A stretch of DNA of 64,000 nucleotides from positions 1-64,000 of the forward strand of contig NIVC01002213.1 of NCBI GenBank assembly GCA_002269645.1. Direction: 5' to 3'. Each line of letters starts with the position of its first letter. Position 1 is the stretch's first letter. Source of the stretch: Macrostomum lignano. Lineage: Eukaryota. Both the position numbers and the translations under genes were made by a program. Positions 783 to 38,303 of this stretch are shown piece by piece. Below the pieces are notes generated by a model, which saw only the letters and a program-made list of their open reading frames with translations, was not told the DNA's origin and did not search any database.

Positions 783-1398
783 TAGATGGAAGAATATCTT
801 TAATGCCCTCAAGCCTGCTATATGTACACTGTACATTCAGAAGTTACGTGCTCTTTTAGCATGGTATTAGATACTCTACATGTATAACATTAAATACATT
901 GAGTGCAAGATCGTTACATGTACGTCTATATATACAGCATGTATTCTGTAGTCCTTCAACATTATTTTGGTTCGAGTGCCGCGCTCTAATCTTGAGGTGC
1001 CAATGTTTAGAGTTCATAGTCCCCAGTCAAATTGCGGCAGTCACTTGTCGAAGGCCCCAAGGCCAAGACCCTAGGCCCCCTAAATACCATGCAGGATGTT
1101 GGGGACTGAGAGTCCCCTTTCGCGACATTAAATAATTAGTAAATGATCGGAGGCTGAGCCTTATGCGCTGAGCCATACTGTAATATATGAGCCGTACCTT
1201 TTTGTAATCCAGTTTGCCAAAACATATATATACGTACATGTAGAACCAACTTCGGGCACTTCAGGCACTGCGAGTTCACTCGATTCAGTGAAGGGTAGGC
1301 AGAGGCAGAGAGCTTCCAGCTTTCTGCCTTAAACTGACTGACTGAATTCATTCTCATAGCATCGCTCTATGCAAATAAGCCTGTCAGCTGTTATCAAA

Positions 1399-2919
1399 CC
1401 AACAGCTCCGCTGCTTTCCGCCGCTCCCCCCAACAGCTCCGTTGCTTTCCGCCGCTCCCCCCAGCAGCTCCGCTGCATTCCGCCGCTCCCCCCAACAGCT
1501 CCGCTGCTTTCCGCCGCTCCCCCCAACAGCTCCGCTGCTTTCCGCCGCTCCCCCCAACAGCTCCGTTGCTTTCCGCCGCTCCCCCCAGCAGCTCCGCTGT
1601 ATTCCGCCGCTCCCCCCCAACAGCTCCGCTGCTTTCCGCCGCTCCCCCCAACAGCTCCGTTGCTTTCCGCCGCTCCCCCCAGCAGCTCCGCTGCTTTCCG
1701 CCGCTCCCCCCAGCAGCTCCGCTGTATTCCGCCGCTCCCCCCCAACAGCTCCGCTGCTTTCCGCCGCTCCCCCCAACAGCTCCGTTGCTTTCCGCCGCTC
1801 CCCCCAGCAGCTCCGCTGTATTCCGCCGCTCCCCCCCAACAGCTCCGCTGCTTTCCGCCGCTCCCCCCAACAGCTCCGTTGCTTTCCGCCGCTCCCCCCA
1901 GCAGCTCCGCTGTATTCCGCCGCTCCCACCAACAGCTCCGCTGCTTTCCGCCGCTCCCCCCAGCAGCTCCGCTGTATTCCGCCGCTCCCCCCAACAGCTC
2001 CGCTGCTTTCCGCCGCTCCCCCCAACAGCTCCGCTGCTTTCCGCCGCTCCCCCCAACAGCTCCGTTGCTTTCCGCCGCTCCCCCCAGCAGCTCCGCTGTA
2101 TTCCGCCGCTCCCCCCAACAGCTCCGCTGCTTTCCGCCGCTCCCCCCAACAGCTCCGTTGCTTTCCGCCGCTCCCCCCAGCAGCTCCGCTGTATTCCGCC
2201 GCTCCCCCCAACAGCTCCGCTGCTTTCCGCCGCTCCCCCAACAGCTCCGTTGCTTTCCGCCGCTCCCCCCAGCAGCTCCGCTGTATTCCGCCGCTCCCAC
2301 CAACAGCTCCGCTGCTTTCCGCCGCTCCCCCCCAACAGCTCCGCTGTATTCCGCCGCTCCCCCCAACAGCTCCGCTGTATTCCGCCGCTCCCCCCAACAG
2401 CTCCGCTGTATTCCGCCGCTCCCCCCAACAGCTCCGTTGCTTTCCGCCGCTTCCACCAACAGCTCCGCTGCTTTCCGCCGCTTCCCCCAACAGCTCCGCT
2501 GCTTTCCGCCGCTCCCCCAACAGCTCCGCTGCTTTCCGCCGCTTCCACCAACAGCTCCGTTGCTTTCCGCCGCTTCCCCCAACAGCTCCGCTGCTTTCCG
2601 CCACTTCCCCCAACAGCTCCGTTGCTTTCCGCCGCTCCCCCCAACAGCTCCGCTGCTTTCCGCCGCTCCCCCCAACAGCTCCGCTGCTTTCCGCCGCTTA
2701 CACCAACAGCTCCGCTGCTTTCCGCCGCTCCCCCCAACAGCTCCGCTGCTTTACGCCGCTTCCCCCAACAGCTCTGCTGCTTTCCGCCGCTCCCCCCAAC
2801 AGCTCCGCTGCTTTCCGCCGCTCCCCCCAACAGCTCCGCTGCTTTCCGCCGCTCCCCCCAACAGCTCCGCTGCTTTCCGCCGCTCCCCCCAACAGCTCCG
2901 CTGCTTTCCGCCGCTCCCC
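1399..2919. repeat. GC-rich minisatellite, 29-31 bp unit (CAACAGCTCCGCTGCTTTCCGCCGCTCCCC), about 50 copies
   Basis: Direct reading of the tandem units; length varies in the C run. It explains the six long repetitive ORFs. Confidence 0.97.
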
Positions 2920-3494
2920 CCGCATGCCTCCAGATCTAGATTCCTTGGTTCTATCCGTGATCCAAAGATCCAACTATACAATGTCTCTATCAATCAAACA
3001 CTAAGTTTGCTGCTCAATCTGCTTTCCATATACCTTGCTTGAGGAGCATATGGATCAGTGAAGTCTAGCCAGTGTCGTTTAGATCGTCAAAAGCAATACA
3101 GCAAGGCATTACAATGTATTTCAAGCGATTCAAACGGCTATTACGCTAGTAGCATTCAACAAGATTGGTTTTGGCGCCATGCAATGTAAAATTTTTGGTA
3201 CAATGTCACGTCAGTAGATACGAAGTACTATAATAATTGTAATGCAGAACAGCGGCAGTAGCTAAATAATGACACCCGAACTTGAATTTTGCGATAATAT
3301 TACACGCAATAAATAGCATTAAAAAACCGGAAGGCAATAAGTAAAACAGTAATAAGTATAAGCTATTGAATCGCGAGTACGCAATATGCACCATCACAGT
3401 TCGCAGCTAGGCAAATAATTTTGGAAAGAAAATAACAACAAGGCACACCCAGTATTGTTGAGTTAAAAGTAACAGTTCACAATGGGAGGCGGTG

Positions 3495-4360
3495 TCAGAT
3501 CAGTTCTCTCAGTGCGAGCTCTCTAAAGGCGGCAACAGCGTGCGCCTGGCCAATCACCTTAGCGCCATCCAACAGGCAATCCGCGACGCGACTCGCCCGG
3601 CCGTAGCCCCGGTGCCAGGGGCCCTGCATCGTGAGCAGCAGGACGTCTTGCACTGGTTGAGAACAGTAGGCCTCCGCGTGGATGGTGTGGCCCGCCAGCT
3701 GATGTCTTCGCCTGCGGAGGGTCTCGCTAGGTGATCGCAGCAGTCTGGCAGCGCGGCGTTCTGCAGGACGACTCGGATGGAGCGGAAGGCCGCCCAGGCC
3801 AGGCCCCTGCGTCGCGCCAAGTCCTCCTGGACACTGGGCACAAGATCGCCGGGGTACGTGAAGCACGCGCAGCGAGGTAGAACTGCTGCATGACCGTCGG
3901 GTGTCCCAGCAGATGATTTTGATAGGCAGCTCCGCAGGTACAGTCATCACCTCCGTCTTCTCGATGTTCACCGCTAGCCCGACCGATGCCGCAGCTGCCA
4001 CCAACCAGGCTGTCTAGCATGCGCTGAGCTCCCTCAGCCGTAGAGGCGGGCAGCGCCAGGTCGTCGGCGTAACCCATGAGTGACAGCCGCTTCTCCGATT
4101 GGCGGCAGCTTGTTTGCCGGCACAGTAGGAAGCTGTCCTCATCTGTTGGCAGGGCCCTACGTAGCACCCCATCGAGCACCAACACGAAACGGTTGGACGC
4201 AAGCGTGTCGCCTTGCAGCATCCCTGAGGTCGTGTTGAACAGGCCGGATAGTCCGTCAGGTGTCACCACGGCGGCCAGGGTCTCCTAGAAGAGAGTTATG
4301 GTTGCTGCGACCAGTCGCTCCGGCACGTGGTATGACCTCAAGACCGGTGCGAGGACATTC
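3495..4360 (-). mobile_element. Non-LTR retrotransposon (RTE-like) reverse transcriptase fragment, disrupted
   Basis: VLRSYHVPERLVAATITLF*ET..VTPDGLSGLFNTTSGMLQGDTLA...MGYADDLAL...GLAVNIEKTEVM...QEDLARRRGLAWAAF covers RT domains 3-7. There is an in-frame stop near 4286 and frameshifts. Confidence 0.9.
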
Positions 4361-4429
4361 TGAAGAGAGAAAATAGAAATATTATTTTTCACTTCTGAAA
4401 AGGATAATTAAATTTTATTAGCAGAGCTA

Positions 4430-5580
4430 CGAGAAAGGGTGAGGCTGAATAGGAAAATAGGGTGGGGCTGGAGGGGCGAAGAGGTTGAGGCTGGGGTAGG
4501 AGAGGGTGAGGCTGGAGGGGAGGAGAGGATGGGGCTGAAGAGGAGAGAGTGGGGCTGGGGGAAGAAGGGGGTGGGGCTGGAGGGGACATGAGAGCGAGGC
4601 TGAAAGAGAACAAGGGTAGGTCCTGGAGAGAAGGATAGGGGCTGGAAGAAAGGAGAGGGTAGGTTTTTGGGGAGAAAAGGGTGAGGATTCAACTGGAGGA
4701 CATAGTAGGGCTAGAGGGGACGAGGGGGTATTGAAGGAAAGAAGAGAGTAGAGGCTAGAGGGTAGGAGGACGAGGTTGGAGGAGAAAAGGTGATGTTAGA
4801 GAGGAGAAAGGGTGAGGGCTAGAGAGGAGGATGAGGCTAGCGAAGAGAAGAGGGTGAGGCTGCAGGGAAGGAGGGTAGGGCTAGAGGGTAGGAGGGTGGG
4901 GCTGGAGGGAAGGAGGGTGGGGCTGGAGTGGAGAAGAGGGTGGAAGCTGGAAGGGAGGGCGGGGCTGGAGGGAAGGAGGGTGGGGCTGGAAGGTAGGATA
5001 GTGAAACTAGAGGCTAGGAAGGTGGGGCTAGAGGGTAGGAGGGTGGGGCTGGAGGGTAGGAGGGTGGGGCTGGAGTGGAGAAGAGGGTGGAAGCTGGAAG
5101 GGAGGGCGGGGCTGGAGGGTAGGAGGGTGGGGCTGCAGGGGAGAAGAGGGTGGAAGCTGGGAGGGCAGGGCTTGAGGGTAGGAGGGTGGGGCTGGAGGGA
5201 AGGGGGTGGGGCTAGAGGGTAGGAGGGTGGGGCTGGAGGGAAGGAGGGTAGGGCTAGAGGGTAGGAGGGTGGGGCTGGAGGGAAGGAGGGTGGGGCTGGA
5301 GGGAAGGAGGGTGGGCTAGAGGGTAGAAGAGGGTGGAAGCTGGAGGGGAGGGTTAGGGCTAGAGGAAAGGGGTGGGGCTGGAGGGAAGGGGTGGGGCTAG
5401 AGGGAAGGGGTGGGGCTAGAGGGAAGGGGTGGGGCTGGAGAGAAGGGATGGGTCTAGAGGAGAGAAGAGGGTGGAAGCTGGAGGGGAGGGTGGGGCTAGA
5501 GGGAAGGAGGGTGGAGCTGGAGGGTAGGATAGTGGAACTAGAGGCTAGGAAGGTGGGGCTAGAGGGTAGGAGGGTGAGAT
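4430..5580. repeat. Polypurine (G/A) low-complexity tract with a degenerate ~21-bp unit (GGGTGGGGCTGGAGGGAAGGA)
   Basis: About 1.15 kb almost purely purine on the + strand, with recurring GGG/GGGG runs. Confidence 0.9.
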
Positions 5581-7023
5581 TATGAAAAAAGGGTAAGAAT
5601 TTAATGGGAAAACATTGTGGGACTGGAGAGGAGGGCAATACTGAAGGGAAAAGAAGGTGAGGCTCTAAAGAAGAGAATATAGGCTAGAAAGAAAAAGGTA
5701 AGGTCTAGCATTAGAGGGAAAAAAGGTCACAACTAGAAGGATATCATGACTTTATAGTTGATTAGACTATGGCTAATTATTTCAAAAAGATTTTTATTCT
5801 AGGCATGCTTTATCTTATATAGTTATATTCCTACTTTTGATTCCCATAAAACAATATTATTAAAAAATTTTAATATAAAACATTATAAACATAGGCTAGG
5901 CTTAGGTCTTATAAAAAGATAGGCCTAAGCTACTTAAATTAAAGAACCAAATGAATTTTAGATCCAAAGAAAAAAAGATTCTTATTATCATTAAAAAACA
6001 TATTCTAATATAGCATAAAGGCTTTATAACACAAAAGAAAAGAAAATATTTTAGACTTAGACCTACTAGTCGATAGTAGAAAATAATCAATGATTTGAAA
6101 TAGAAGGCTATTAGATTTTAGAAGCCTAGAAAGCTTATTAAATATGCATTTTGCCTAGGCTAAACAAAAAATTGGATAGTTATGTAAATTTTAAATGATT
6201 CCAAAGTCTAAAGAGCAATAAATAAATCTGTAAAGTGTAAGCCTAACTAATTGGCAAGTGGTAAAATTTTATGTATAGGCAGGCTTATTTTAATTTAGCT
6301 AGCTAAAATGCAATTTGAATTGTACACTTGTTTACCAATATCACCCGTGGCTTATAGAACCGGCTGGTGCATACGTGCGCAAATGTATTAAATACAACGT
6401 AAAATAAAGCCAGAAATACATGCAGCGCTACACCGCTGCATTCATTACTGGGCTGCAAGGCCGTGTTTTCCGAGGATAGAATGGCCTCACGAGTGGGACA
6501 CGGCTGGCTGCGCGCATTTTAAATTCTTTCATAGAAAACGGAATTCTACCCGTATTCTATAACACGGTAAAATGTTACGGCTCGATAGACATCGGGAGTT
6601 TTTCATCTTATATTGCGCCGATGTTTATGGAAAACATAGGTGTTCTTTTGTAAAGTAATGGGCTGCATACGCCGATTTATTAAAAAATCAGATGCGAAAA
6701 TTACCAAAATCATCTAAGTCTGGCTTTATTTTGCTTTGCAGAGGTAAAATTCATGCATCTTCGATTTACCTACGTTTTGTTATAATTTGAGAGTTCATAT
6801 AAATTAGAAGTTTTGCCTATATTTGTGCAACCGCACGAGGATACGAATTTTTGCTTCCTTCGAAGTTTTTACTGTTTGTACTCTCTTATGGGTAAGATTA
6901 TTCATTTTTTCCTTTTCTCTCAAATTCTGTATTAATTACTTAACTTGCTATGCATGCTTTCTTTTGCAATACCTGTTTTCTAATTGTAGAGAGTCATTTT
7001 AAAGAGCGTCAATATTTCTGGAA

Positions 7024-10000
7024 ATGAATAACCGGCATCAACAAGACTACCAACAACCGTATCCTTTCTTAAAAATCTTTAAAAAAATATTATATGCTGC
7101 TAAATTAGCTTCATGCCGAATCTAAGAGTGTCTAATTCAATGGTATTTGAATTGGCCAGCTAAATCTTAGCTATATTTGTACTTTGTAATTATGTAAGCT
7201 AAGGACAAGGTTTGAAAATTTCCAAATCAAGAACTGCAATTTTAAATAGACACAGAAGGATTTCTTTATTACTCCTAGATTTTTATATATTTAATTTTTG
7301 TAGAATTACTTAGCATATTAATATCAAATTGAAAATAAATTTTTGGAAATATATAATAAATAAAATGCTATATTATTATATAGTATAGTATATAAATATA
7401 GTATATATTTTATAGTCATTGTATATACTTATAAATGCATTAGTTTTAGAAGGTAAAGTGGCTATTTTTATTGTCATGGAGAAATAGATTTTATTTATAT
7501 TATTAATTAATAATTATATTATGTAAGCCAATTAAAGTTAAAGACAAAAACCACTACTACTAGAAATTTCTATTGTTTTATATCAATATTTTAATGACAC
7601 ATTTTTTTAAAAATTAATAGCCTTCATTGCTTTTTATTTTAAGTTTGTTATTTGATCAAGTTTGATAGTTTTTGTTTTATGTGCTGATTATAAAAATAAC
7701 CATTTTGCTATTTATATAATTATCAAAACAATAACAATTCCTTACCATATTGAATAAATCAACTATTTTTTATTGATTAATTTGGTTTAGAATTATTTTT
7801 ATATCATTTTAAATTAATAATTTGATCATTACCAATATATTAATAATACAATTTTTCCAAATATTTAGTTACAAGGCTAAAAATTATAGCCTTATAGTTA
7901 GAATGTTGGATTTATAACTAAAAGGTTAGGGTTAGATTTCTGATGTATTTGTAACAATTTGTGTCCTTAAGCAAGACATTTAACTATATATTGTTTCAAC
8001 TTGCCTAGCTATAACTAGGAGTCACAAAATCCTAGATTCTGTCAATCCCAAGATTAAGAAATGTCAAATCCCGGGATCCAAGGATTAATATTTTTCCAGT
8101 ACCATCCTTGCTGTAACATTGTTATAATGTTATATCAATGCTGCAAATTACTTTTTTATCACGTGATTAATGTGAGAATATCCGCAAGTTGCAACTAAAA
8201 ATAAGCAAACACTATGCAAAGCTAAATAAATGTATGTACATGTATTACATATTATATAGTAGCACTAGCAGTATGCACATTGCAAAACAAATGCACATGA
8301 CTCATGGACATCCACATGGTTGTGGAGTTGTTGGCCCATGGCATGAGGCACACTCACTAAGTCACAAGGAGTCATAAGGACTCACAGTCACAATACAAGT
8401 TATAACCTACCACCGCCTGGGCATTCACATGGTCACTTGTCAGTCTAGAGTCTAGACTTGCGTGTCCTATGAGTTCAAAATTTAAAATCAAATCTCAACG
8501 TTAAATGATTTAAACAAGACTCAATTCAAACAACATTAAAGACCTTACAAAGTGGGCAATGGAGCATGGACATGTATGCGTATATATTCCATATTTGAAC
8601 TAGCTGCCATTTTATGATAAAATACTTGTGATTATATCAAACATTATAAAAACATAGCATTAACATTCCGGGATTGAATCTGGACCTATGAATCCTGGGA
8701 TCCCAGGATCCTGGAAAAAGCGCTAAATCCCAGGATCCCAGGATTGTGACCCCTAGCTATAACCCATAGTTCGGATCATGGCAGGCATATGCCAGAATGA
8801 AAATTCATGTTTATGCCAATGTAAAATAAATAAAAAATACACCAAGACTAAAATTGTTTATACGACATTTTTAACAAATATATATTTTTAGGAATTCAAA
8901 ATTTTTACTAAACTTTAAAACAGCTATTTTTTGCTAAAAACTGATATTCTTTTGTTTTAATTTTGATTTTCTTGTGATTGCATTAATGTTTTCTATTTTA
9001 GTTTCCAATTATTTTTAAAAAGCTTTCAACATTGGTTGATATTTAACTACACAATTACATTAGCCTTGAACTTGGCAATTTTTTGTATGCTGACTCTGTA
9101 CACTTCATGTTGAACCTGAAAATTCTATATGCCAAGTGTACGCCAAGATTGTCAGCAAGAGCAAAAATATACTAGAAAATTCTGGCATAAAGGCCACCTT
9201 CCAGACTATGGGCTATAACATGGGTACCAACATTAGCCAAGATAAATAAAGGTATATGTGGCAACTTCCTAGTCCTTAAACTAAATAATAGCTATGTATA
9301 TACCCTTTAGATGTGCTACATAATAGTTGCTACTAAGCTATTGGTTGCATATCTCTTAGGGCAGGTATAATAAACAATTATTATATTATTATTAATATTA
9401 TTATTATTAGCCATGGAATTATTCTTTTTTCAAGTTTTGCTTGCCTAATGAATATCTCATAAATAAAAAACAATCTTAAAGCTCATGGTCTATAATAGCA
9501 ATATTTATTTAAACAATTAATATTGTTGCTCTTTGGCAATTAGGCATATGCTACTGAAAATGTTACATAAACAAATGTATAATCTAAGTAGCTATATATA
9601 AAACAGAAGCTAGGAGATAATTGAATTAGCTTTACTTAAACAAGTATACTGTAAGATAATTTAGTTTTAGGATAATAGCTTATAAATTAGTTAACTTAAT
9701 TTAGAATTAAAGAGCTAGCATATAAATGTGACTATTTTTTCAAAATTTCTTTATTTTCCTTAACTGCCAAAATTAACTAACTCTCCAAACAGCCCTTATA
9801 TCCAAGGTAAGATATTGAGATTCCATTTCTTTCTATATTAATTTTCATAATTTTACAAACTTGATATATTCTATTCATTTAGGTCCTTATCAAACGGAAT
9901 TTCAAGAGGGAAATCGTGCGCACTTGGTAAGCAACCAAATTTGTGTAGTACTTTTATTTTCATACAATACTTACATTACCCATGGCTGATGAGTTGTGGT

Positions 10001-13000
10001 CATAATTGTGGTAACAGCATCAACTCTGCTCTGGAGAACTTGGAGGTTGCAGCACAGCATTTTGCCACTTTCACCTGCAGGCTCAGAACTATCGGTATTC
10101 TCAGGGACAGCCGCAGTCCCAGGTGATCTATGGCCAGAACCCAAATGCCGCCTACCAGCAGCAGGGAGCCAGCTCTCTTCAGCCTGGCTGGCCAGCTGGC
10201 AACATGCCAGGCCAGTTTCCGTCCAGCTCGATGCAGCAGCAGTACATGGCGCCGTATGTGCAGCAGCCTGTTCAGCCAATGATGCCCATGCAGCACCCGC
10301 AAGTTCCGCCAGGCTATGTGAGTTAAAAACAGACTGTTGGAGTTGTGCATATCAGCGAGGACAAATCATTAGAAGCACGAGGAACTGTTTAGGGGCTGCA
10401 CTAGCTATCGCCGTTTTGTGTAGGAAAGAAGCCTATCTCCACTGTTTTTTTTTCGCACAAAACCAGCACCCAAAATGTTTTTTTAAGAAACAGTAGGCCC
10501 AAGTTGGTTCTTTATACCTATTGTCGGTGCAAGTTTCTGAAGTGTGCAAACACTAGTATGATTACTCCCTATCTTTCCCATGCTGTCACATTTTCTTGAT
10601 CTGCTTAAAGCCACAGTTCCAGGTGTTCACAATGGCCGCTCCGCTGATTGCAAAAGTGAGAACCGGCCGTTCCAGTTTCGGTGCTTTTTCTGCCGCTCGG
10701 CTGTCTTGTTCGTTTTATGAGCTCGATTTTAGTGCCTGTTAATTATTATATTTTATAACTGTTTATTTCGAATAATTTTAATTGTCTTAAGTTTCTTTGA
10801 GTTTCTTAATAGTTTGGGGACTTGGTATAAAATTATTGAAGTTAAAGAAATAATTGCTCAATATTGTGCTTTAAAATTTGATAATTTCTACTGCTGCCGC
10901 CGTGCTCAAACCGCTGAAATTCTATTGAAGCCCACTCACCCCGTCCACACAGCCGCCAATGCAGCCGTGGAACGCCATGGCCAACTACCCCGGCTCGAAC
11001 CCGCAAACCTACGGCATTCCGGCGATGCAGCAGCAGCCGCCGCCGCCGCATCATCAGCAGCCAAATCCGGCATATCCTCAGCAGTTCGTGCCTGGCGCCT
11101 ACGCTAGCGGCACTCGGCCTCAGACTGGTCAGCTGCACTCCAGGGCTCAGTTCCACCCGTCCGGGCCCGCCCCCGCGCCTCATCAGCCATTCATGCAGCA
11201 CGGCGGGCCCGGCCCTGAGCAGCACCAGCCTGCGCCACAGCAGCAGCAGCAAGCTGGCCAGCAGCAACAGGAGGCTGCGGCCCCAATAAGAGAGAGAAAG
11301 CGGCTGGCCATTGTGAATCCGGACACGAAAGAGGAGGTGCACGTTGAGAAACCAGCGACTTCAACTAGCGCCGCCGGTTCCGCAGCCGCCGGCATTCACC
11401 AGCCGTCGCCACCGCCGCAGCTAAGCGGGCCAGCGCATCGGCCCAGTCGCGGTCTGCCAATCGAGAAGCCGCCGGCCGATGGCCAGACGGTTCAGAAGGA
11501 CCTCCTCAAGCTGCGGGCCACCGCTAAGCCAGCGACAGCAGCAGCCCAACAGCCGACATCCACGACACCTGCTGCCCCACCCGCTACTGTCGAGCCGCAC
11601 CCAGCCGCCCCCTCCGACGCAGCGGAGGCCAAGGCTTCAGCAGCAGCGCCCGCTCTTGCTGCCCAGCCCGAGTCGATCAGCGTCGACCCTTTGCCTCCAC
11701 CAGCCAAGCCACCGACGCCTTCGCCCTCACCAGAGGTGTCGGAGGCTGCTCCGATGCCGGCGCCCGACGCTGAGGCAAAGAAAGAAGGCGCAACAGCTCC
11801 GGCTCTGAAGTCGGAGTCCTCCGCTGCCGAATCGCCCGCCGCGGACTCGCCTGTTCCGACGGCGCTGGCGCAGAAGTCCCCAGTGGCGTCGCCGCCAGTC
11901 AACGGGGACGCAACCGACGGCAGTCGTCAGTCGCCCGCAGTGGCCCCATTGTCGCGCAAGGCGTCTGTCGATGCCGGACGCGGCTCGGCTGGGCCGGAGC
12001 GCAGGACGCAGCAGCCGCCGCCGCTCATTCAGCCACCGGCAAGCGGCAAGTACGAGTTCAAGCCAGAGCCGGGCGAGTCGGACAAGACAACGCTTGAAAA
12101 GAAGCTGAAGTACGACCGGGGATTCCTGCTGAGCCTGCAGTTTACTGATCTCAGCAACCAGCGGCCCGACGAGCTACCGGGAGACATTCCTGAGCTGCTG
12201 CCCCGCAGCGACTCCGTAAGTGCTGCAGTGTTTTTCGATATGTGTATATATCATTTATTAAGGTCCAAAGTGATACCTTATTAGGCGTCGGATTCACGAC
12301 TCGAAGGTCGGGGGTTCGAATCCCGATTCCGGCTGAGCTTTTGTTTGCACATCTGCCCATTCGGACAGGTGTAGTCATTTATTATTAATTATTATTATAA
12401 AGATAAAATCAGTGATTATCTGTTGGAATTACCGTCAGATAATTGCAATTTTTGCATTGCTTGACGTCAAATTTCGGCAATACTGAGTCACCATTCATTC
12501 TTTTGCATTGGTTTCTTTTCATCAGTTCTACGACTGAGATTCACATTTTCAAACTTTTGATACCTTTTTCAGCAGCAGCAGCCGCCTCGAGCCGTTCGCG
12601 GCTTCGATTTCACGCCTTCATACGTGGTGCAGCCGAACTACGTCGCGAAGGACAAAGGGAAGTCCATCTACGGATCTCATCGTGGCAGTGGAGGCCGCGG
12701 TGGTGGCGGCGGCGGCCCGCCGAAACCGGCGCCCAAGCCGCAGCTTGTGATTGAAGTGCGGAAGGATAAGGTCGACCTGCACAAGAGCGACAGTGCCTAT
12801 GTGCCCGGATTCCTGCAGAAGAAGCCTGACGACCAGGAGCAGCTCAAGAAGGTGGAGATCGAGCGGAACATTCGGTCCATCCTGAACAAGATTGCTCCGC
12901 AGAACTTTGAGTCCTGCTTTTCTCAGCTGACCACAACCTGCGATATCGGCAGCATCCAAGGTCTCAATGCCTGCGTTGACATCATCTTTGACAAGGTAAT

Positions 13001-16000
13001 AACTGTCTTGTATTGAGAGAGTAGACTGGTACCTACTTCTCCTATGATGACCGTTATCCCTGACTTATATGCAATGCAGAAAACAGTTTATGTCTGATTA
13101 CGCCATAAATAAAATTCATTTCAACTTATCTGCAGTTGCTCTTGCACCCACCTGGCTAAATATGCGCCCATTTTCTGTCTGCAGGCCACTCGTGAGAAGT
13201 CCTACTCATCCGTGTTCGCTGAGATCTGCAAGCGGCTGGCCTTTGTAAGCGATAGTCACAAATATTATGCAAACACTAAGACGTTTTGTAAGCTCATGAG
13301 CTTAATTGCTAATGTTTTCCATTTTCATACCTGCAGCTCAAGGTGAACTTTCCCGAGCAGTCTCAGGAGAACAAGCAGTTCATCGGTTTCCGGTCCCTGC
13401 TGCTGAAGAAATGCCAGGAAATGTTCGAGACTCCGCTGAAGGAGCAGATGGAGCAGAAGGGGGCGCAGTGGCAAGAGAAGATCGACGCAGAAGAGAAGGA
13501 AGACAAGAAGAAGGCGCTGGAAGAGGAGAGGGACGAGCAGATGAAGAAAGCAAAGGACCAATATTACGGGAACATCAGGTGAGTTTCTGTTAGAAGCTGG
13601 GTTAATAAAATGGGGTCCTTTATTGTGTATTGTGTGATTTCATGCTGCCTCACTGCAGATTCATCGGCGAGCTGTTCATGAAGGACATCCTGACGGCAAA
13701 CATCATCCATCAGTGCATTGTATCGCAGCTGAAGTCAGACCACAGCAGCAAGAGCATGTTCACGGAGTCGCTGGAGTGCCTGTGCGAGCTGCTGAAGACA
13801 GTCGGCAAAAAGCTGGAGAGTGAGAATAACGCCAAGGCTCGAATCGACCAGTACTTCGAGCGGATCAAGAAGCTGATCAACAGCAAGGAGATCGAGTCGA
13901 AGGTTCGGTTCCGCCTGCAGGACATCGTAGAGATGCGACAGCGGAACTGGGAGCGGCGCGAGATGGAGATTCGGCTGCACGAGAGGCCGATGACGAAGGA
14001 GGAGCTGGAGCAGAAGGCCAGGCAGGATGAGTCGCGGAAGCAGCAGCTGGCAGGCATGCAGCAGCAGCAGACTCGAGGTGGCCGGCAGGGCGGCTTCAGT
14101 CGGCCACCTGCTGGGCCGACCCCTGCGGCCAACAGCGAGTGGACCCCAGTAACAACGACTCGCAAGGCACAGAAGATGGACGCTCGCAAGATGGTCATCG
14201 GCAGCAGCCAGGAGCAGGGCCAGTCACAGACTCGGCTGGGCCCGTCTCGACCGTCGTTTGTGGCCAAGGCAAGGCCCAGCGGCAAGGATGACGGAGGCCG
14301 TGGCACGCCGAGGTGAGAATATTAGATGGTTAGACTAGCCATCTACGCCCCCCCAGTTGGGGGGGCAAGAAAGAAAAGAACAATTTCTTGCACCAGCACC
14401 AGCTCTGAAGCCAAACCTTCTACCCTAAGATATCAACAACCCATGTGAGCTTTGACATCCAAGCCTCACTTTAAATTAGTTGGTTGGATTATATTATTTG
14501 GCGTCCTCAATTAGTTTTCCTGTCCTAGGCCTCAGAAATGTTTAGAATTTGTTAAACACAAACTCGCTCCTCCGCTAGGCTGGGCAGTCAGAAGAACTCG
14601 CGAGAGTCCAGCGCCAGTCGTGGCACCAGTCGGGAGGCCTCGCCGCACCTGGATCCGCAGCAGCTGCAGCAGCCCGCTGTGGCAGCGTTGGCGGCCTCCG
14701 GCAAGATGCCGCGCTCTCAGTCCAGCCAGGAGCTGCCGGCGCGGGCCGTTGAGTCGCCACGGTCCGTTGAGCCGCCGCCGATACCGCGGGACGTTCTGGA
14801 GCGGAAGAGCAAAAACATAATGATGGAGTGGCTCGGCTCCCTGTGCTCGCTAGAAGTAAGCTCGTGTCTTGCATGAATGTGTCTGAAGAATCTGAAGCAC
14901 CGCATCCTCTCCCTCACCTTCTTCCATTCAGGACACCAAATCCAACTTCATTGAAATCTCGCGTCACCCAGAAATCAGCGCCTTCGTGGAGGTGAACGCG
15001 GAGCACCTGCTGAATGAAAACAGCAAAGAGCTTCGGGAGAGGGGCGGCCAGCTGCTCTTCGAGTTGCTGCACAGCGAGCTGCTCAGCTCGAAAGATCTTA
15101 TTGAGGGGTGAGTCTGGGCAAAGTGATGAAGCTGCTCACCGCGATGCGTCAGCAGGATGAATTTTGGAATTACCGTCTGACCCGGTGAGGCCCCCGAGGC
15201 CCCCGGCTGACGAAGTTTTTGCTGTCTGAAGCTCGACGCGATCCCAGCTGTCAGGAGCCTAGGAGGCCCAGCTGTCAGGAGCCTGGGAGGCCCAGCTGTC
15301 AGGAGCCTGGGAGGCCCAGCTGTCAGGAGCCTGGGAGGCCCAGCTGCCAGCAGCCTGGGAGGCCCAACTGTCAGAAGCCTGGGAGGTCCAGCTGCCAGCA
15401 GCCTGGGAGGCCCAGCTGTCAGGAGCCTGGGAGGCCCAGCTGTCAGAAGCCTGGGAGGTCCAGCTGTCAGAAGCCTGGGAGGCCCAGCTGCCAGGAGCCT
15501 GGGAGGCCCTCCTGCCAGCAGCCTGGGAGGCCCAGCTGTCAGGAGCCTGGGAGGCCCAGCTGTCAGAAGCCTGGGAGGCCCAGCTGTCAGAAGCCTGGGA
15601 GGCCCAGCTGTCAGGAGCCTGGGGAGGCCCAGCTGCCAGCAGCCTGGGAGGCCCAACTTGGCCCAGCTGCCAGCAACCCGAGAGGACCAGCGGCTCTGGG
15701 CTATGGGTTGTGAATTGATTGCAGTAGATTGCAGACTCCCACCCATCATCCGCTCCCCCGCAGCTTCTCACCCATCATGGAGATGGCGGACGACTTCCTG
15801 TCGGACTTCCCGCTTTTGTCCAGCTACCTGGGAGAGATTTTCTCCTCCTTTGTGCAGAAGGCGGCCTCCTACTTGTCCTGCGTGCAGCAGCTGGTGCTGA
15901 GGATCCCCGCCGACCTGCGAGACTCGAGCCGGCGACCTCTGCGGGGCGAGGTGGTGTCGCGGGCGCTGCACCTGGCCAGCGGGCGGCTCGGCCACGACCG

Positions 16001-16802
16001 GGTGGGCGCGGCGTTCCGGGAGGCGGGGATGGCGTGGCACAGCCTGCTGGAGCTGCCGCAGGCGGACGCGGCGGACTTCGTTGCAGCCAACAAGCTGGAG
16101 TTCACTCTGCATGAGACGATGCTGTCGCCATCGCCCATCGCCCTGGACGTCGTCGGCGAGCGGATCGAGCAGAAAATCGGCAACGCAGACGGCGACGCCT
16201 CGGCGAAGGACCTGCTGTCCGAGGAGCTGATCGCCCTCATAGAGAAGGAGGTGGACAAGAAGCAGATGGAGTCTCGGGAGTTCATCCGGGTTCTCGTGCG
16301 AAGCGTCTGTCGCGGCTGCACTCGTGAGTGGGCAGTCGGTGATGTGCATTTGCAGTGATGGGACATCTTTATGGCAGGTCAGTTGTGACTTGAATTCTCA
16401 CGCTTTGCAGAGAGCAAGAAGCTGAACAAGCCGCTGTTCCTGCTGGTTAAGCCAGTCCTTATGCGGCACATCGAGACCCATGAGCAGCAACAGCAGTGGG
16501 TTCTCAGCGCCACCTGCGACACCATAAAGAGTGCAGGCCTTTCACTTGGTGAGTTTTGCTTTGCTGGTAGCAATGCTCTGACCTTTCTACTCACTGTGCT
16601 TCAGTAGTTTCAACGGCGCATTCCTTCCAAATGCACTGCAGAGTTGATAAACGACCTCTTTTTCGCCTACCTTGATAACGCAATCATCTGCGAGGACTCG
16701 TTCAAGCAGTGGTACCAGGAGGCCGGCAAGGAGCTTCAGGACGCCACTCAGGTGTTTATTAACACTCTGGAGTCCACGCACAGCCCCAGCACTGACTCCT
16801 AG
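7024..16802 (+). CDS. EIF4G: Eukaryotic translation initiation factor 4 gamma (eIF4G), about 1427 aa, 14 coding exons
   Basis: Exons: 7024-7058, 9793-9806, 9883-9926, 10081-10317, 10953-12215, 12573-12995, 13185-13244, 13337-13578, 13659-14312, 14579-14855, 14932-15107, 15764-16323, 16411-16548, 16642-16802 (4284 nt, frame continuous). Motifs: eIF4E-binding YDRGFLL (YxxxxLL), DFTPSY, MIF4G (IRSILNKIAPQNF, IIFDKA, GNIRFIGELF, LECLCELLKTVGKKL, SKVRFRLQDIVEMR), MA3 and W2 domains. The first three small exons are less certain than the core. Confidence 0.95.
8016..8755. mobile_element. Non-autonomous TIR element (hAT-like MITE), 740 bp, 8-bp TSD
   Basis: TIRs TAGGAGTCACAA / TTGTGACCCCTA (11/12). 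Flanked by GCTATAAC at 8008-8015 and 8756-8763. Subterminal AATCCC(G/A)GGAT motifs. Confidence 0.8.
8764..9211. mobile_element. Second non-autonomous TIR element, 448 bp, same 8-bp TSD
   Basis: TIRs CCATAGTTCGGA / TCCAGACTATGG (10/12). Flanked by GCTATAAC at 8756-8763 and 9212-9219. Confidence 0.75.
12283..12335 (+). mobile_element. tRNA-derived SINE-like or tRNA pseudogene fragment in an eIF4G intron
   Basis: GCGTCGGATTCACGACTCGAAGGTCGGGGGTTCGAATCCC contains the B-box/T-loop GGTTCGAATCCC (12313-12324). No recognisable D-arm or acceptor stem. Confidence 0.55.
15243..15674. repeat. Minisatellite, 24-bp unit (CCCAGCTGTCAGGAGCCTGGGAGG), about 17 copies, in an eIF4G intron
   Basis: Tandem units within intron 15108-15763. 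Confidence 0.95.
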
Positions 16803-19281
16803 CCCCTGCATTTTGCGAGCCCAAGCCACCGAATCCCCTGATTGGCCCGATTCGCGATTAACGGCACCGATTTCCGCCTCCCGCACTAAATGCCCTCTTC
16901 AATGATTCGCGCTCCTATGCTGATAGAAATAGTTGTATCCTCTCTTGTTTGTTGTCTTTGTTTTTGTCTTACCTATCTGTAGCTCCTTGCGTTCTTAAAT
17001 CCGGCTTTCTATTTCACTCCCATAGATTTGACAGGCTTAAGTTAAATATAATCCTCTCTATTGCTTCTGCCCCGCTCTTGGACTCTATTTGACTCGCTAA
17101 ATAATTTAATCCAAAAAGCACATTACACTTTACATGCCCGGTTTAGCTTTCCGGCTGAGCTGCATCCCTTAGATTTATTGTTGCCATGGTTACTGCAACT
17201 TGACGAACTTGACGATCGGCTAGCGGATTCGGCTTTGTTTAGTGCCCTTATCTGTATGGAGCAAAGGCGTTAATTAATGTTACTTGCATTAGTCATGCAA
17301 CTATTATTAACAATTTTGATTGTGCATGAATCCGCCGTCTTTTTCTTTATATGTACAATTGGTGGCTTCGTACGCTGCCGAGCTGCCGCAGTGCCGTACT
17401 TTTACGGGACGCAACACTAATATTAATGCTTAATTGCGTGAGTTAATCCTGAAGACAAGCTTTTTGATTGCTTAGTGAAAGCAAGTCTATTATCGGAATA
17501 GAATAAGTGCGCATCCGAGTGATCAGTGATCAGCTTTATGTCTATTCAGCTAAGCCATCATAAAGCTATTAAACTTGAAATTAGACTGAGCAGAAAGCTG
17601 GGCACAATTTCAATTGTGGCTTCTTCTGCAATTGAAGAGTCTCATGTTCTACCGACAGTAGCTATGCAGTAAAGCAGTGATTCAATCACAAATAAATTTT
17701 GAATCCATGTCTGCCACGAATAGCGCAATCCCGATCGAGACTCTTAACAGACCGCGTGCCTATCTTGACTGTGATCTTATTGCTTTTATTGACTGACATT
17801 TGTTCAATGCTTTCAGAAAAAAAACAATTAATAGCACTATACTGTAAGTATCCAAAATTTTCATAGGATTGTTTCTCGTGCCGAAAATTATTTTTGGCAG
17901 GGATCCAAGCTGAAATATTGAGGGAAAGTGACCAGTTTCTGCTCCCAACGCTTATCATGGATGCAGGGATACTCAATACAGTATTCAGTAGTGTATTGAG
18001 TGGTCCCTGCATGGATGTGCACTCTAAGGAAGGGCAGCGACATGCCATATTCACTTTGTGGGGCATGGGGACTCCGGGCAGCTAATTTATTGATTTTAGG
18101 TCTAAAAACAATAATCCCTGAGAAACTTTATTTCAAGGTCATACACAAAAGTGGTGCTAGGGATCCTCATTGATATTACAGTATAACTTCCATGGGCCAC
18201 CACAGGCCATGCAAGTACATGATGTAAGTAAGCTGATCAAGCACTATACTTGTTAAATTAATGCACAGAATTGTGTAGTTAGTCACATGAAAGTTTTTCC
18301 GTTGTTCCTTAATACAGTTAACTTTAAACTTGTTGAAATTTAGGCATGCACTTAAAATCTATGGAATGTATCACGTAATTTTTGGCCGCCCGGCCATTTA
18401 GTTTGCATGCATGTGTTACGCCGAATTGCGATCGGATTAATTGATGCTGGTGGAAGCTGGCTATCCCCTTCTACACTGTACATGTATGTGCGACGTGCAT
18501 GTGCTTCATTTATCTGTTCTCGTACTCTAGGAACTGCTCGGGCAAAAGCCAGCCCGCAGCACCTCCCCACTTCAAAAGTTTACAGTTCATTCTTTGTAAT
18601 GTACTCTTGGCTTAGTCAACAGTCTTTCACTTCTCCGAGTGCAGTGTTTCAGTACAAACCTGTAACAGGAACTTATAGGAACTGCGCGTCAAGAAAACTG
18701 AAATTTATGGCTGCATTGCATGGATTGCAGTCTCAAATGAAAGTCACGGACTACTTAGGTAGAACGACGCGAATCTTGCAAGTGTTATTCAAGGGCTAAT
18801 TAAATTAAATTAATTTTATCCTGGCTCGGCTGCTACTCGTAATTCATGCAGTCTCTAGCGTATGTACATAAATGGTACATGTAAATGTAGGTATCACTTA
18901 ACCCCGGCAGGGTCGAGCCCAGAGAAACACGTTCGAAGCAGTTTTTGCAAGAGACAAGTTTAATTTAATAAGCCCGGTAATTTATTAACGAAAAATTACT
19001 TAAAAGAATACACGCCACTAAGCTTACTGCATTCTTTTTTAAAAGCCTTAGAAAGTTTTATTCAGTTAAAGTAGGTCAAGCTAATTAATTACAATTAAAG
19101 TGGTGAACTTTTGTTTAAACGTTTAGATTTGCTTCGCTTTATAATTTTGACTTAAATGTTTATGATTATATAATAATAGCAGACAGATAAATTACTATTT
19201 TTTATTCTTCTTCCTACTGCCTAAATAAATATTTAAGTATTAAATAACAACAACAGCATTCGTGAAATTAAACAATACAAA

Positions 19282-22200
19282 ATGAACACTCAAACTGGTG
19301 GAATCCAACAGCTTCTCCAAGCAGAGAAGAAAGCACGTGAAAAAATCGAGGAAGCTCGAAAAGGTAAATCTGAAACTTACAACTTACAAGTAAATACTAA
19401 ACAATAGGACGTTGGGTTGGGATTGCATACATGAAAATCCTTTGACTGAAGAGATTTATTTCTAATGCATAACTTTTGCTGACGGGTTCCAGCAATACCA
19501 GTGTAGTATTGATGTGTACATTATAGCTTAACACAAAATTATATTTATAAATTATATAAAAATTGATAAGTAAGTCATTTGTTTTAAACCTAGGCCGCTT
19601 GGGCCTAGGCCTACCATTTAGATAATTTATTAGTTTTTATTTTGTTATGTTTCAAGTTTTTCATTTTTAGAAAAAGTTATAAAGTTAATGCATATATCAT
19701 TTTATTCTATGAAATAAGTTGCCTATCTCAATTAGTATAAAAAGTTCCAAAAGTTTAAACTCAGAGGTGTAGGAAGGGGGAATGGGAATGTACCCCCCCC
19801 CCAAAAAAAACATCTAATTTTTATGGCTGCTTTTTAAGTATATTTCTTCTCTCATCCTAAAGATTATTTCTAGTGGCCTCAAAGAAAATTTCTAGCTACA
19901 TGCCTAGTTAAACAGTGACAGACCAAGGTGGGCACAGACCAATGTTGAGGGAAGAGGGAAGGGGAGGGAAGTGAGAGGGAAGGCTGAGAGGAGGATAAGG
20001 TATAGAAACAGAAGCTCTCTCTCTCTCTCTCTTATCAATTCCTCTTATCTCAATCTCTGAGTCCATATCTTATTTGCCAAACTATCTAGTTTTGGATAGG
20101 CCTAGCTTTTGAGTAACCAATACTATATTATTTACAATTAGGCCTATAATTATTCATTAGGCCTATAGTCAAAGTTAGACATTAAAAATGGTCTTTTGAC
20201 TCCTCTAGCTAGAAGCTAGATTAGCCAATTGTATTTTAAAGAAGTTAAAACAAAGTTATTTCTCTTTGCATAAGCTGATTTAAAGCAATGCCTATATTGT
20301 AGCCACTTTAGTATATGGCCACCTTAGACATGTGCCAGTTAAACTGACTATTTTATAATTTAATGCAAGCATTTACAAATTAAATTTGCTCCTATTTTAT
20401 TTATTAAAGACTAGTTAAATAGGCCTTGATGTTCTATCTGTGATAAAAGTAATTAAGGCCCATAGTCCAGAGTATATAATATGCATGTGAGAATTTTTAT
20501 TGCCCTACACAGTTTATGCCAGAGGGTTGGATCAAATCCACTTAGTGTGTGATAATAGACCAATAGGGCAAATTTCATGGTTGCAACAATAAAAAAACAT
20601 TTTTGGAATTGCAACAATAAAAGACCTTTTTTGGCACTCTGCATTGCTCTGATAGTTGTGGCATGCCAACAAAAAAGTTACACATAATTCTACTACTTAG
20701 AGCATGCCAAAAAACCTTAAAATATTTGATGAATGCCATATACCATATTAGACTGTCTGGGACCTTGTATGCAAAATTAGTAGTAGACCTGTTTTACCTA
20801 TATGTAAAGAAAGCTATAATTTATAACACTATTAATTAATTTTCAAAGACTATCACCATAACAATGTATTTGTTGCATTAGATTATTTAGATAATGATAA
20901 AAAACAAATAATGCCTATCATTAAGTAGAGCACAAAGTAGTAAAACCTAAAATGGGAAATTTTGTAAGTTTGGAGGCACAGGGAGGTACATATAGCAAGT
21001 CATCAATTAGAATTTGGGTGGCTAGCCTATAAATAGAAAATAATAATATAGTATTTTTCCTTTGAAAAAAAGATTTAACATATTTCATAGTGTCTAAAAC
21101 TTAAAAAAATTGACAACAGCCTTTTCTCACTCAAGTTTATCAAATCAAATATAAAATAAAAAATCTTTGTTACTTTTGCAGTGCTACTAAATGCCTTGTT
21201 AATTGAACATTATGTGCATCAAAATCATGGATATTGGCAAAATGCTGCAAATTTGCTTTTTAACTTGCTTAATTGCATAATTGGTAGTATCCTACTACAA
21301 GTATTATGTTGCACGTTATGAGATGTTTTTTCGGCATACATTTTTAATGTTTTGAATCTACGAGCTTTTTAATCTATTTACCCTATCGAAGGCGACATTT
21401 AAACAAAAACACTGCACGGCAAAAATAGTCCTGAAGACGGGGCGGCCATAGTGGTAAACAGCAACGTCAATGCGCTCGTGCGACCCCCTCTCCAAGTTTG
21501 AAGCAGCTTTTGGGTCATAAAAACCGTCTCGCCAGGACAATAGGCAGACAGGCCCGGGGTCTGAGGCTGCTAATATGATAATAAGCTAAAGCAACATGCT
21601 TGAAGAAGCTGTTCACCAGAGCAGGTGTTCACCGAAGCGCATCGAGTTCAATGGGGGCTGTTTTGGCGCAACAACAAAACGTGCGCGCGTAGCTGCATTT
21701 TATTGGCAGGGACGCCTAAAGCTAGAGATCTGGACTGCAACAGGCACCGAGGAACAGGGGGCAGCTGCCCCCCCCCCCCCTACATTTAGATTATCGCTTA
21801 TTGACTGCTATGGAAATCCGTTCAGGTGAGGTCGAGGAGGTCAGTATCTTGGTTTTGCAACTTTTGCCTCCCCCTGACAAAACATGCCGCCCTGCACACT
21901 TCCACAAAGTCCACCCACTATAGAGTTTGTATACTGCTGTTCATATACTAAAAATGAGTTGTCATTCTGAGATGTCAATGGTTTATGTGGGAATTTGCTG
22001 CAAGATTTCAAGGCTCACGGGAAGAATTACTGAGATGTCAAGGCTCATGAGGGAATCGCTGAGATGTCAAGACTCATGGGGGGGAGTTGCTGAGATGTCA
22101 AGGCTCATGGGGGAGTTGCTGAGATGTCAAGGCTCATGGGGGAGTTGCTGAGATGTCAAGGCTCATGGGGGGAGTTGCTGAGATGTCAAGGCTCATGAGG

Positions 22201-22946
22201 GAATCGCTGAGATGTCAAGACTCATGGGGGAGTTGCTGAGATGTCAAGGCTCATAGGGGAGTTGCTGAGATGTCAAGGCTCATGGGGGGAGTTGCTGAGA
22301 TGTCAAGGCTCATGAGGGAATCGCTGAGATGTCAAGACTCATGGGGGGGAGTTGCTGAGATGTCAAGGCTCATGGGGGAGTTGCTGAGATGTCAAGGCTC
22401 ATGGGGGAGTTGCTGAGATGTCAAGGCTCATGGGGGAGTTGCTGAGATGTCAAGGCTCATGGGGGGAGTTGCTGAGATGTCAAGGCTCATGGGGGGAGTT
22501 GCTGAGATGTCAAGGCTCATGGGGGAGTTGCTGAGATGTCAAGGCTCATGGGGGGAGTTGCTGAGATGTCAAGGCTCATGGGGGAGTTGCTGAGATGTCA
22601 AGGCTCATGGGGGAGTTGCTAAGGGGTCAATGCTGCAGATTTCTAGTATTTACTACTATTTTCGTAACCATGCGTACTGTTTAGTAGAACGAACACTTAG
22701 CTACCGGTGGTTTGAAGCCGTACGGGGAAAATGCACTTTGTAAATTTTTCACTTTTCCACGCTCCACACTTCTTTTGTTAAACGAAATCAGATGCTTTGG
22801 TCAGTCAATTCAATCTAGGAAGTTTTGTGCGAAGGGTTTGGACAATTTTCTGCTCAATCTTTCATGCGTTTTTATGGCCTAAGTTTGTTGCTCAGAGCTG
22901 AGTCGCCGCTCCAAATTCTCTGTCTAGGACTCCGCGGTGTTTTTGA

Positions 22947-22983
<37 letters not shown>

Positions 22984-28281: not shown

Positions 28282-29592
28282 CGAGGGTCACTCAGAAAGT
28301 TCTTAGCTTGAACACGAAAACAGCAACAAATGAACTAAAAAAAGACTACAAGTGCTCAAAATACTCTCCACCGGCATTGATACAGGCTTGCATCCTGTGA
28401 AACCAGCTGTCGAAGCACTGCCGCCAATCCTCATCCCGGAGCTCCTCGATGATGTTTTTAAACTCATTCACAGCTTCTTCCGGTGAAGAAAAGACCTGGC
28501 CCTTCAGAATCTCCTTGCACTTCGGAAACAGAAAAAAGTCGCACGGTGCCAGGTCTGGACTGTAAGCAGGGTGAGTCATCAGCTGGACCCCACAGTCAGC
28601 CAGAAACTCCAGAGTTTGAGCCGCCGTGTGCGCGCTGGCGTTGTCGTGGTGCAGAAGCACCCCACGCATTCCGCACCTTGGGCGCCTCTGGCTCACAGCA
28701 GAAAAGACCTTGGGCAGGCAAACCGTTGTGTACCAGTCAGCGGTGACTGTCTGGCGATCTTCAAGTGAAACGGAAGCCACATGCCCAGTGCGCATGAAGA
28801 AACAGGCCACCATCTGCTTGCCGACACTCCGGCTGCGTCGAAACTTGGTGGGGCTGTCCTCGTCTCCAAAGGTCCACATGGCTGACTGGCGCTTGCTTTC
28901 GGGGTCGTATTGATAAATCCAGGTCTCATCGCCCGTGAGGATGTCCCAGATACGCCGGCTGGTCCCGGATTCGAATTTCTGCAGCATGAATCGGCACCAA
29001 GCCACCCTGGTGTCCTTCTGCACGTCAGACAGCTGATGGGGGATCCACCTGGAAGCCAGCTTCCGCACTCCAAGGTGTTCGTGCAGAATGGCGTGCACAC
29101 TCCCCGATCCAATACCGATCTCCTGCTGGATCTGCTGGTAGGTCACTCGCCGGTCAGCGGCAATCATGCTGGACACAGCGCAGATATTTTCTGGAGTCAC
29201 TGCGTCACAGGGTCTCCCGGATCGATGTTCATCTTCGAGGCTTTCTCGACCTCGGCGAAACTCAGCGAACCAGTTTTTGACGGTTGCGTATGAAGGACAT
29301 ACATGGGTGAAAACGTTCTGTAAAGTTTGATACGATTCGGCCGGCGACTTGCCTTGCTTGAAGTGCAGGTACATCATTGCTCTGAAGTCGCGATTTTCCA
29401 GCTTCATTGTTGAATTGAAGAACTCAGGGGGGTGAACTGACTTTAACTCGCTGCAGTGGACTCAAAAGTGGCTGCTTCTGTTTGAAATTTTTGCTGCGAT
29501 ACTTTTAAAAGTTGGTCTTTACCATAGACAAATTTCATGCTTCTACGTCTCGTGGATCCTACTCAGGCTAAAGACTTTCTGAGTGACCCTCG
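28282..29592 (-). mobile_element. Full-length mariner transposon, 1311 bp, TA target duplication
   Basis: TA|CGAGGGTCACTCAGAAAGT ... ACTTTCTGAGTGACCCTCG|TA: 19-bp perfect TIR, extending to about 26 bp with 2 mismatches. Contains an intact transposase ORF. Confidence 0.97.
28346..29407 (-). CDS. Mariner transposase, DD34D, 353 aa, uninterrupted
   Basis: Two N-terminal HTH regions, WIPHQL (WVPHEL-like), TGDETW, HHDNASAH and YSPDLAPCDF. I counted 34 residues between the second and third catalytic Asp. Confidence 0.97.
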   Translation of the reverse strand: MKLENRDFRAMMYLHFKQGKSPAESYQTLQNVFTHVCPSYATVKNWFAEFRRGRESLEDEHRSGRPCDAVTPENICAVSSMIAADRRVTYQQIQQEIGIGSGSVHAILHEHLGVRKLASRWIPHQLSDVQKDTRVAWCRFMLQKFESGTSRRIWDILTGDETWIYQYDPESKRQSAMWTFGDEDSPTKFRRSRSVGKQMVACFFMRTGHVASVSLEDRQTVTADWYTTVCLPKVFSAVSQRRPRCGMRGVLLHHDNASAHTAAQTLEFLADCGVQLMTHPAYSPDLAPCDFFLFPKCKEILKGQVFSSPEEAVNEFKNIIEELRDEDWRQCFDSWFHRMQACINAGGEYFEHL

Positions 29593-37800: not shown

Positions 37801-38100
37801 CCATCTTCGGCGGCGCCTGCGCCCTCACGCCGCGGCAATTCAAGGCCATCAACGGATTTTCGAATTTGTTCTTCGGCTGGGGCGGCGAGGACGACGACTT
37901 TGCTAACAGAGTGGTCTGGTCCGGCTTCAAGATCAGCCGCTACCCGCTGTCCATCGCCCGCTACACCATGATCAAGCACAAGACCGAGGAGAAGAACAAG
38001 CCCAACCCTATGCGGTGAGCCCGGGCCTGCTAGTTCTGGTGGGGTGGCGGATAGATAGATAGAAAGATAGATAGATAGATAGATCGATAGATAGATAGGC

Positions 38101-38150
<50 letters not shown>

Positions 38151-38209
38151 GCAGATAGATAGATAGGCAGATAGATAGATAGGCAGATAGATAGATAGGC
38201 AGATAGATG

Positions 38210-38303
<94 letters not shown>

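Follow-up and report, generated by a model that had tools for sequence, protein, structure and literature searches.

The closest described counterparts of the intron considered here are found in vertebrates, where human EIF4G3 and mouse Eif4g3 are catalogued as minor-intron genes (MIDB; Olthof et al. 2019, PMC6717393, Tables S1 and S2) and EIF4G3 is named elsewhere among the genes with U12-type introns (PMC6239176). We analyzed bases 1-64000 of contig NIVC01002213.1 of the flatworm Macrostomum lignano (assembly GCA_002269645.1), a 64-kb stretch referred to below as the window, and found that positions 7059-9792, which interrupt codon 12 of an eIF4G-family gene in phase 2, are very probably a true minor-class (U12-dependent) intron of the GT-AG subtype, judging from their sequence. 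The vertebrate and flatworm introns reside in the same gene family, eIF4G, and belong to the same GT-AG subtype. The 5′ splice site reads ACA/GTATCCTTT in human and mouse EIF4G3 and ACC/GTATCCTTT in M. lignano (the slash marks the splice site), and the branch site of mouse Eif4g3, TTTTCCTTAACT, is identical to that of M. lignano, while human EIF4G3 has TTATCCTTAACT. The lengths differ widely, with 87 kb in human EIF4G3 and 51 kb in mouse Eif4g3 compared to 2.7 kb in M. lignano. Both mammalian introns probably lie no more than about 1 kb from the start of the transcript and would hence be the 5′-most introns of their genes. The vertebrate EIF4G3 minor intron may be located in the 5′ untranslated region (UTR), and intronic polyadenylation in the 5′ UTR of EIF4G3 has been described (PMC12548281). 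The N-terminal protein regions of M. lignano and vertebrate eIF4G cannot be aligned.

Canonical U12-dependent GT-AG introns are the class reportedly defined by Burge in 1998. The flatworm intron differs from them in being followed by a microexon of 14 nucleotides (nt), too short for ordinary exon-definition complexes, and in the distance from the branch site to the 3′ splice site, which is 29-30 nt compared to an optimum of 11-13 nt (reviewed in PMC3584512). Minor small nuclear RNAs (snRNAs) have been found in schistosomes (PMC2770079) and in the planarian Schmidtea (PMC6312358), so that a minor intron in a macrostomid is to be expected and is not surprising. The kind of element, the gene family as a host of minor introns and the junction itself are already public, and the result is correct and fairly ordinary. 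Literature searches on the minor spliceosome in Macrostomum or Platyhelminthes returned no paper dealing with Macrostomum, and the supplements of PMC10639083 and PMC11347168 likewise yielded nothing. The coordinates of the features discussed below are collected in Table 1.

Table 1. Features of the M. lignano eIF4G locus in window coordinates; the last three rows give the spans of further copies within their own locus sequences
Feature	Position	Strand	Remarks
eIF4G-family gene Mlig013413g1 (BOX15_Mlig013413g1)	7024-16802	+	14 coding exons, 1427 amino acids (aa); KYDRGFLL, MIF4G, MA3
First coding exon	6990-7058	+	ATG at 7024; encodes MNNRHQQDYQQ plus 2 nt
Intron 1	7059-9792	+	2,734 nt, GT-AG, phase 2, 28% G+C; minor-class by sequence
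U12-type 5′ splice site	7059-7067	+	ACC/GTATCCTTT; donor G at 7059
Copy-specific block in intron 1	8019-9212	+	about 1.2 kb; direct repeat CTATAAC at flanks; absent from copy g2
U12-type branch site (12-mer)	9754-9765	+	TTTTCCTTAACT; candidate branch adenosines 9762, 9763
3′ splice site AG	9791-9792	+	first AG past branch site; no polypyrimidine tract
Microexon 2	9793-9806	+	14 nt, CCCTTATATCCAAG; encodes PYIQ; followed by strong U2-type donor AAG/GTAAGA
Intron 2	9807-9882	+	76 nt, U2-type, GTAAGA...TTTAG
Exon 3	9883-9926	+	44 nt; encodes GPYQTEFQEGNRAHL; donor TTG/GTAAGC
Paralog Mlig022532g1	10001-24586		locus sequence
Paralog g3	3001-12835		locus sequence
Paralog g2	3001-11638		locus sequence

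The exact boundaries of intron 1 are supported by the deposited annotation. The 14-exon model spliced across the junction 7058/9793 yields a protein identical, residue for residue, to the 1427 aa of PAA59908.1, and the gene range annotated for this protein on NIVC01002213.1 (7024-16802) matches the window coordinates. Since the gene models of the assembly were built from RNA sequencing (RNA-seq; STAR, StringTie, TACO), mapped de novo transcripts and TransDecoder (PMC5730564), this exact match makes 7058/9793 an annotated, transcript-derived junction, whose use in mRNA is supported indirectly by the deposited model. The junction is also unambiguous, because any shift by a single base alters the mRNA, and intron 1 must be excised exactly to yield the deposited protein. 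An original prediction, made from the letters of the window and their open reading frames, had placed this element as the first coding intron of eIF4G, and the match to PAA59908.1 bears this out together with the domain content of the protein, which has an eIF4E-binding motif (Y-x4-L-hydrophobic; KYDRGFLLSLQF, KYDRGFLL) in exon 5, then a MIF4G domain (HEAT-1; residues 629-868, E = 2.5e-27, Pfam) and then an MA3 domain (residues 1099-1174, E = 1.7e-05, Pfam), and is thus a member of the eIF4G family. No W2 domain scored above the Pfam threshold in the 1427-aa protein; its C-terminus (...ICEDSFKQWYQE) resembles W2 by eye. The nearest named homologs, about 35% identical, are eIF4G1/3 from tunicates, amphioxus and fish, and a search with the MIF4G region returned only relatives of about 35% identity, each shorter than 700 aa and with an uninformative N-terminus. 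The first eIF4G matches had pointed to a tunicate as the source of the window; this was rejected in view of the PEPCK gene, which indicated M. lignano, and conclusively by the exact match to PAA59908.1.

The three small coding segments at the 5′ end (7024-7058, 9793-9806 and 9883-9926) join exon 4 in frame at 10081 (MNNRHQQDYQQPPYIQGPYQTEFQEGNRAHL/AQNYRYSQ...), in agreement with the single open frame that had been predicted for them. The codons of exon 1 run ATG AAT AAC CGG CAT CAA CAA GAC TAC CAA CAA CC, ending at 7058. Exon 4 has a coding character right from its beginning and contains no in-frame ATG before codon 42, so that upstream coding exons are needed. A protein search with the spliced N-terminus, for which low-complexity candidates were abundant, gave a single match, for which an exact look-up found nothing and which falls in a cluster with the M. 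lignano paralog PAA87386.1; the N-terminus of this paralog (MTIFLEMNNRHQQDYQQLPYIQGPYQTEFQEGNRAHLAQNYRYSQ...) has the same exon joins as the original prediction. Metagenome scans with exon 3 and exon 5 gave no match. In the interval 5600-10080 we also considered other ATG-bearing first coding exons with good U2-type donors; the in-frame ones occurred only in a repeat or in an inserted element and were rejected as implausible.

The splice signals of intron 1 conform to the minor-class consensus at both sites, as had been predicted. Compared to the published consensus sequences (5′ splice site /RTATCCTTT, branch site UCCUUAACU; PMC2846911), the donor GTATCCTTT matched at 9/9 positions and the branch site, TTCCTTAAC at 9756-9764, likewise at 9/9. 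The branch motif TCCTTAAC(T) is represented by TCCTTAACT at 9757-9765, that is at -36 to -28, within the range of -40 to -5. The 12-mer that includes it, at -39 to -28, falls inside the scan ranges of SpliceRack-type methods (-40 to -5), MIDB (-40 to -1) and intronIC (-55 to -5); it is the branch 12-mer not only of mouse Eif4g3 but also of human HTT and human INSIG1 and scores 100 in the MIDB tables, in which the closest 5′ splice-site 12-mers (ACCGTATCCTTC and GCCGTATCCTTT) score about 89-92. The expected location of the branch site about 30 nt before the AG, with no long polypyrimidine tract, was also found: the segment from -25 to -4 is A-rich and 50% pyrimidine, the lowest value among the 12 introns compared, while the other 11 range from 59 to 91%. 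These 11 introns all have GTRAG-type donors (11/11), in line with the expectation that the remaining donors of the model are major-type, which leaves intron 1 as the sole minor-type intron of the set. It lies in phase 2 and has C at -1 (T in one paralog), which fits the reported tendency of GT-AG U12 introns to avoid phase 0 as well as purines at -1 (PMC7367187). Weaker TTAAC and TAAC motifs are present 16 and 12 nt from the AG, both of which lack the CCTT core. A frame-preserving alternative acceptor, AAC/T (9777), was rejected, as it would make a GT-AC intron, a disfavoured terminal combination (PMC3584512), and conflicts with the deposited protein. Sites of the relaxed U12-donor-like form RTATCCTY occur in the window at chance level (6 seen, 5.7 expected), among them 6837-6844 (-), 11072-11079 (+), 16935-16942 (+) and 5737 and 30489 (both -); none of the matches elsewhere in the window coincides with a modelled eIF4G exon boundary.

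The assembly holds four copies of the eIF4G gene, namely the window copy (g1) and g3, g2 and Mlig022532g1, and the three paralog models are annotated with the same intron 1 junction. In all three, GTATCCTTTCT stands precisely where exon 1 is annotated to end, and TCCTTAAC is followed 27 nt on by the acceptor AG. The donor is identical from +1 to +11 in 4/4 copies, as are the branch 12-mer TTTTCCTTAACT and the last 36 nt of the intron, from TCCTTAAC to CAG, although intron length varies (2728 nt in g3, 1799 nt in g2 and 3738 nt in Mlig022532g1). The g3 intron is 98.7% identical to that of the window, and the splice-site contexts of the two differ by one A in a poly-A run. Variants that set copies apart include the junction codon, CCC for P or CTC for L, and ATC or ATA in exon 2. 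Mlig022532g1 is the most diverged copy, with exons 94-97% identical and an intron 1 interior that cannot be aligned. At its donor, identity with the window copy is 11/11 from +1 to +11 and then falls to 36/61 aligned positions (5 gaps), while at the 3′ end 40/41 positions from -41 to -1 are identical, compared to 36/45 just upstream. This pattern fits a history in which the splice signals would have been held constant while the interior of intron 1 turned over. Mlig022532g1 shares a contig with g2, at a distance of about 13 kb and inverted relative to it, and its product of 1617 aa contains an additional, diverged MIF4G-like block inserted past the eIF4E-binding region.

Several observations weigh against the minor-class assignment. 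The candidate branch adenosines (9762 and 9763) are 29-30 nt from the last intron base, outside the short spacing of U12-type introns and more typical of U2-type introns, and for this reason the earlier description of a "textbook" U12 intron holds for the donor and the branch consensus but is overstated for the spacing. A single occurrence of each 8-mer core was counted in the 64 kb on either strand, compared to chance expectations of 1.4 and 1.8, and the series GTATCCTT...TCCTTAAC...AG on one strand within 10 kb was recovered in 18% of block-shuffled windows (3,000 shuffles preserving local composition). The motif pair is therefore not beyond chance, and it is the match to the annotation and the conservation among paralogs that carry the case. 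Introns 2 and 3 are themselves 96-99% identical between paralogs, so that a conserved 3′ segment, taken by itself, says little about selection. As the four copies are near-identical, RNA-seq need not reveal the window copy as the expressed one. Finally, a scan of the 64-kb window against Rfam gave no hit to an snRNA or to any other RNA family.

The strongest competing explanation, which we nonetheless consider improbable, is that the junction is real and that the major (U1/U2) spliceosome removes intron 1 despite its U12-like signals. Sequence class does not prove which spliceosome acts, some U12-consensus sites are served by both, and the U12 branch site fits the degenerate U2 motif (PMC10853781); the branch-acceptor spacing noted above points the same way. 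However, the donor fits the U1-complementary consensus at +1 to +3 only, while the 11 other donors are strong GTRAG sites, and the 3′ end of the intron is devoid of a polypyrimidine tract. A 9/9 donor and a 9/9 branch site in four copies are moreover hard to explain without U11/U12 pairing, and minor snRNAs are present in other flatworms.

Marginally less probable again is the explanation that the window copy is silent or uses another 5′ exon, so that its annotated junction would stem from multi-mapping reads of the other copies. Duplicated blocks with an identity of 95% or more amount to 180 Mb of the assembly (PMC5730564), and the near-identity of g3 means that short reads can hardly assign expression to one copy. 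The window copy nevertheless has an intact 1427-aa reading frame, intact splice signals at 13/13 introns and no marks of a pseudogene, and silence of this one copy would leave the intron class and the junction valid for the gene family. A chance co-occurrence of the motifs, combined with a faulty 5′ end of the gene model, can hardly be credited: the shuffling result and the character of exons 1-3, which are short, have 43-45% G+C and encode Gln by CAA only while the downstream exons mostly use CAG, speak for it, but it is countered by the exact match to a transcript-derived deposited protein, by the same junction in three further copies and by the requirement of exon 4 for upstream coding exons.

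If intron 1 is indeed of the minor class, its removal may be pictured as follows. U11 snRNA would pair with the donor GTATCCTTT and U12 snRNA with TTCCTTAAC, with A9762 or A9763 probably bulged as the branch point, and, for want of a polypyrimidine tract, the first AG downstream (9791-92) would then be taken as the acceptor. The long spacing and the short exon 2 suggest two possibilities. Recognition of so remote an acceptor may be aided by the strong U2-type donor located 14 nt past it, and communication across exons between the two spliceosomes has been documented (PMC8034651); alternatively, the 76-nt intron 2 might be spliced out first. We infer that M. lignano has a working U11/U12 system that acts on intron 1. 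Retention of the intron would lead the frame into it, reading ...QQPYPFLKIFKK..., and production of full-length eIF4G from Mlig013413g1 would therefore depend on a splice of the slow class. This could have a regulatory consequence, and we speculate that minor splicing controls eIF4G output.

These data provide one clean, paralog-supported minor intron in M. lignano, a transgenic regeneration model, and imply retention of the minor spliceosome in an early-branching rhabditophoran flatworm. The four copies of eIF4G intron 1, which differ in length, would serve as a convenient reporter for minor-spliceosome knock-downs. The near-identical 5′ minor intron of mammalian EIF4G3 raises the possibility of a deep link between minor splicing and eIF4G supply, testable via intron positions. 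It is conceivable, though we hold it to be rather doubtful, that the flatworm and vertebrate introns are orthologous, in which case an ancient bilaterian intron would have been kept for more than 500 million years where the eIF4G reading frame begins and lost or converted in eIF4G1 and in rotifers, among others. If so, production of eIF4G, which is a scaffold of cap-dependent translation, would be coupled in distantly related animals to the activity of the minor spliceosome, and this link would be tightened in M. lignano by the suboptimal 29-nt spacing and the 14-nt microexon. An eIF4G-like gene of the bdelloid rotifer Rotaria sordida resembles the flatworm gene in its MNN... start, its Q/P/Y-rich N-terminus and its early coding intron, but the first intron of the rotifer gene is U2-type (AAC/GTAAGA), 58 nt long and located past codon 32 instead of at codon 12. 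There was no sign of a shared minor intron at the R. sordida locus, which is neutral with regard to an ancient origin.

The region surrounding intron 1 has further features. Exon 1 has a proposed acceptor, ttgtag/, at 6989, followed by a 34-nt leader before the ATG; an in-frame stop is present at 7000-7002 and the exon contains no ATG earlier than 7024. This acceptor and an upstream donor, TATGG/GTAAG at 6891, are both kept in the paralog Mlig022532g1, and the two sites would form part of a putative 5′ UTR structure upstream of 7024. The coding microexon between the minor intron and the 76-nt major intron is kept in 4/4 copies, with one synonymous change, in Mlig022532g1, and can be seen in the deposited paralog protein as ...QQLPYIQGPYQ.... 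Intron 3 (9927-10080, 154 nt), in which G+C rises from about 9985, is identical to that of the most diverged paralog at 153/154 positions, a conservation at the level of exons that could reflect a regulatory element, an alternative start region or gene conversion.

No other intron of the gene is as long as intron 1, as expected from the original prediction that its 2.7 kb would be long for the locus, and it is enlarged by copy-specific insertions that, on sequence grounds, appear to be of the mobile-element kind. Compared to g2, 122 additional nt are present in the window copy at 7603-7724, besides the 1.2-kb block, which looks like a mobile-element insertion and has a marginal internal inverted repeat. 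Neither the window nor the Mlig022532g1 locus yielded another copy of these blocks. The suggestion that the intron had been inflated by miniature inverted-repeat transposable elements (MITEs) therefore stands as regards copy-specific insertions, but the identity of the window block as a MITE is unsupported. At the same site, g2 carries a different element of 369 nt, with 15-nt terminal inverted repeats (GGGTCT[T/C]CCTAAAAC). The target site GCCTAGCTATAAC/ thus holds different elements in two copies, the 1.2-kb block in the window and the MITE-like element in g2, which suggests an insertion hotspot or the replacement of one element by another.

Elsewhere in the window, the deposited annotation, whose gene ranges agree exactly with window coordinates, has a gene for V-ATPase G from 19282 and one for a lipase from 23070. 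Minisatellite arrays rich in G+C occur at 1329-3042, 15165-15694, 36544-37569, 38030-38470, 43969-44665, 56300-56830 and 61760-62170; several are intronic (for example in eIF4G intron 11), and they contain long spurious open reading frames on both strands and contrast with the introns (about 28% G+C) and the exons (about 57% G+C). An intact 353-aa open reading frame at 28346-29407 (-) resembles a mariner/Tc1-type transposase by eye, and its exact protein was not on record in the gene-position index. Further genes recognized by eye in the translations at 34840-38018, 43566-46300 and 54292-57706 include a beta-1,4-galactosyltransferase-like gene, a CtBP-like dehydrogenase-fold gene and PEPCK (GTP). 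The first PEPCK exon is 76% identical (alignment including gaps) to one M. lignano PEPCK in UniProt, which is presumably a paralog or an older prediction.

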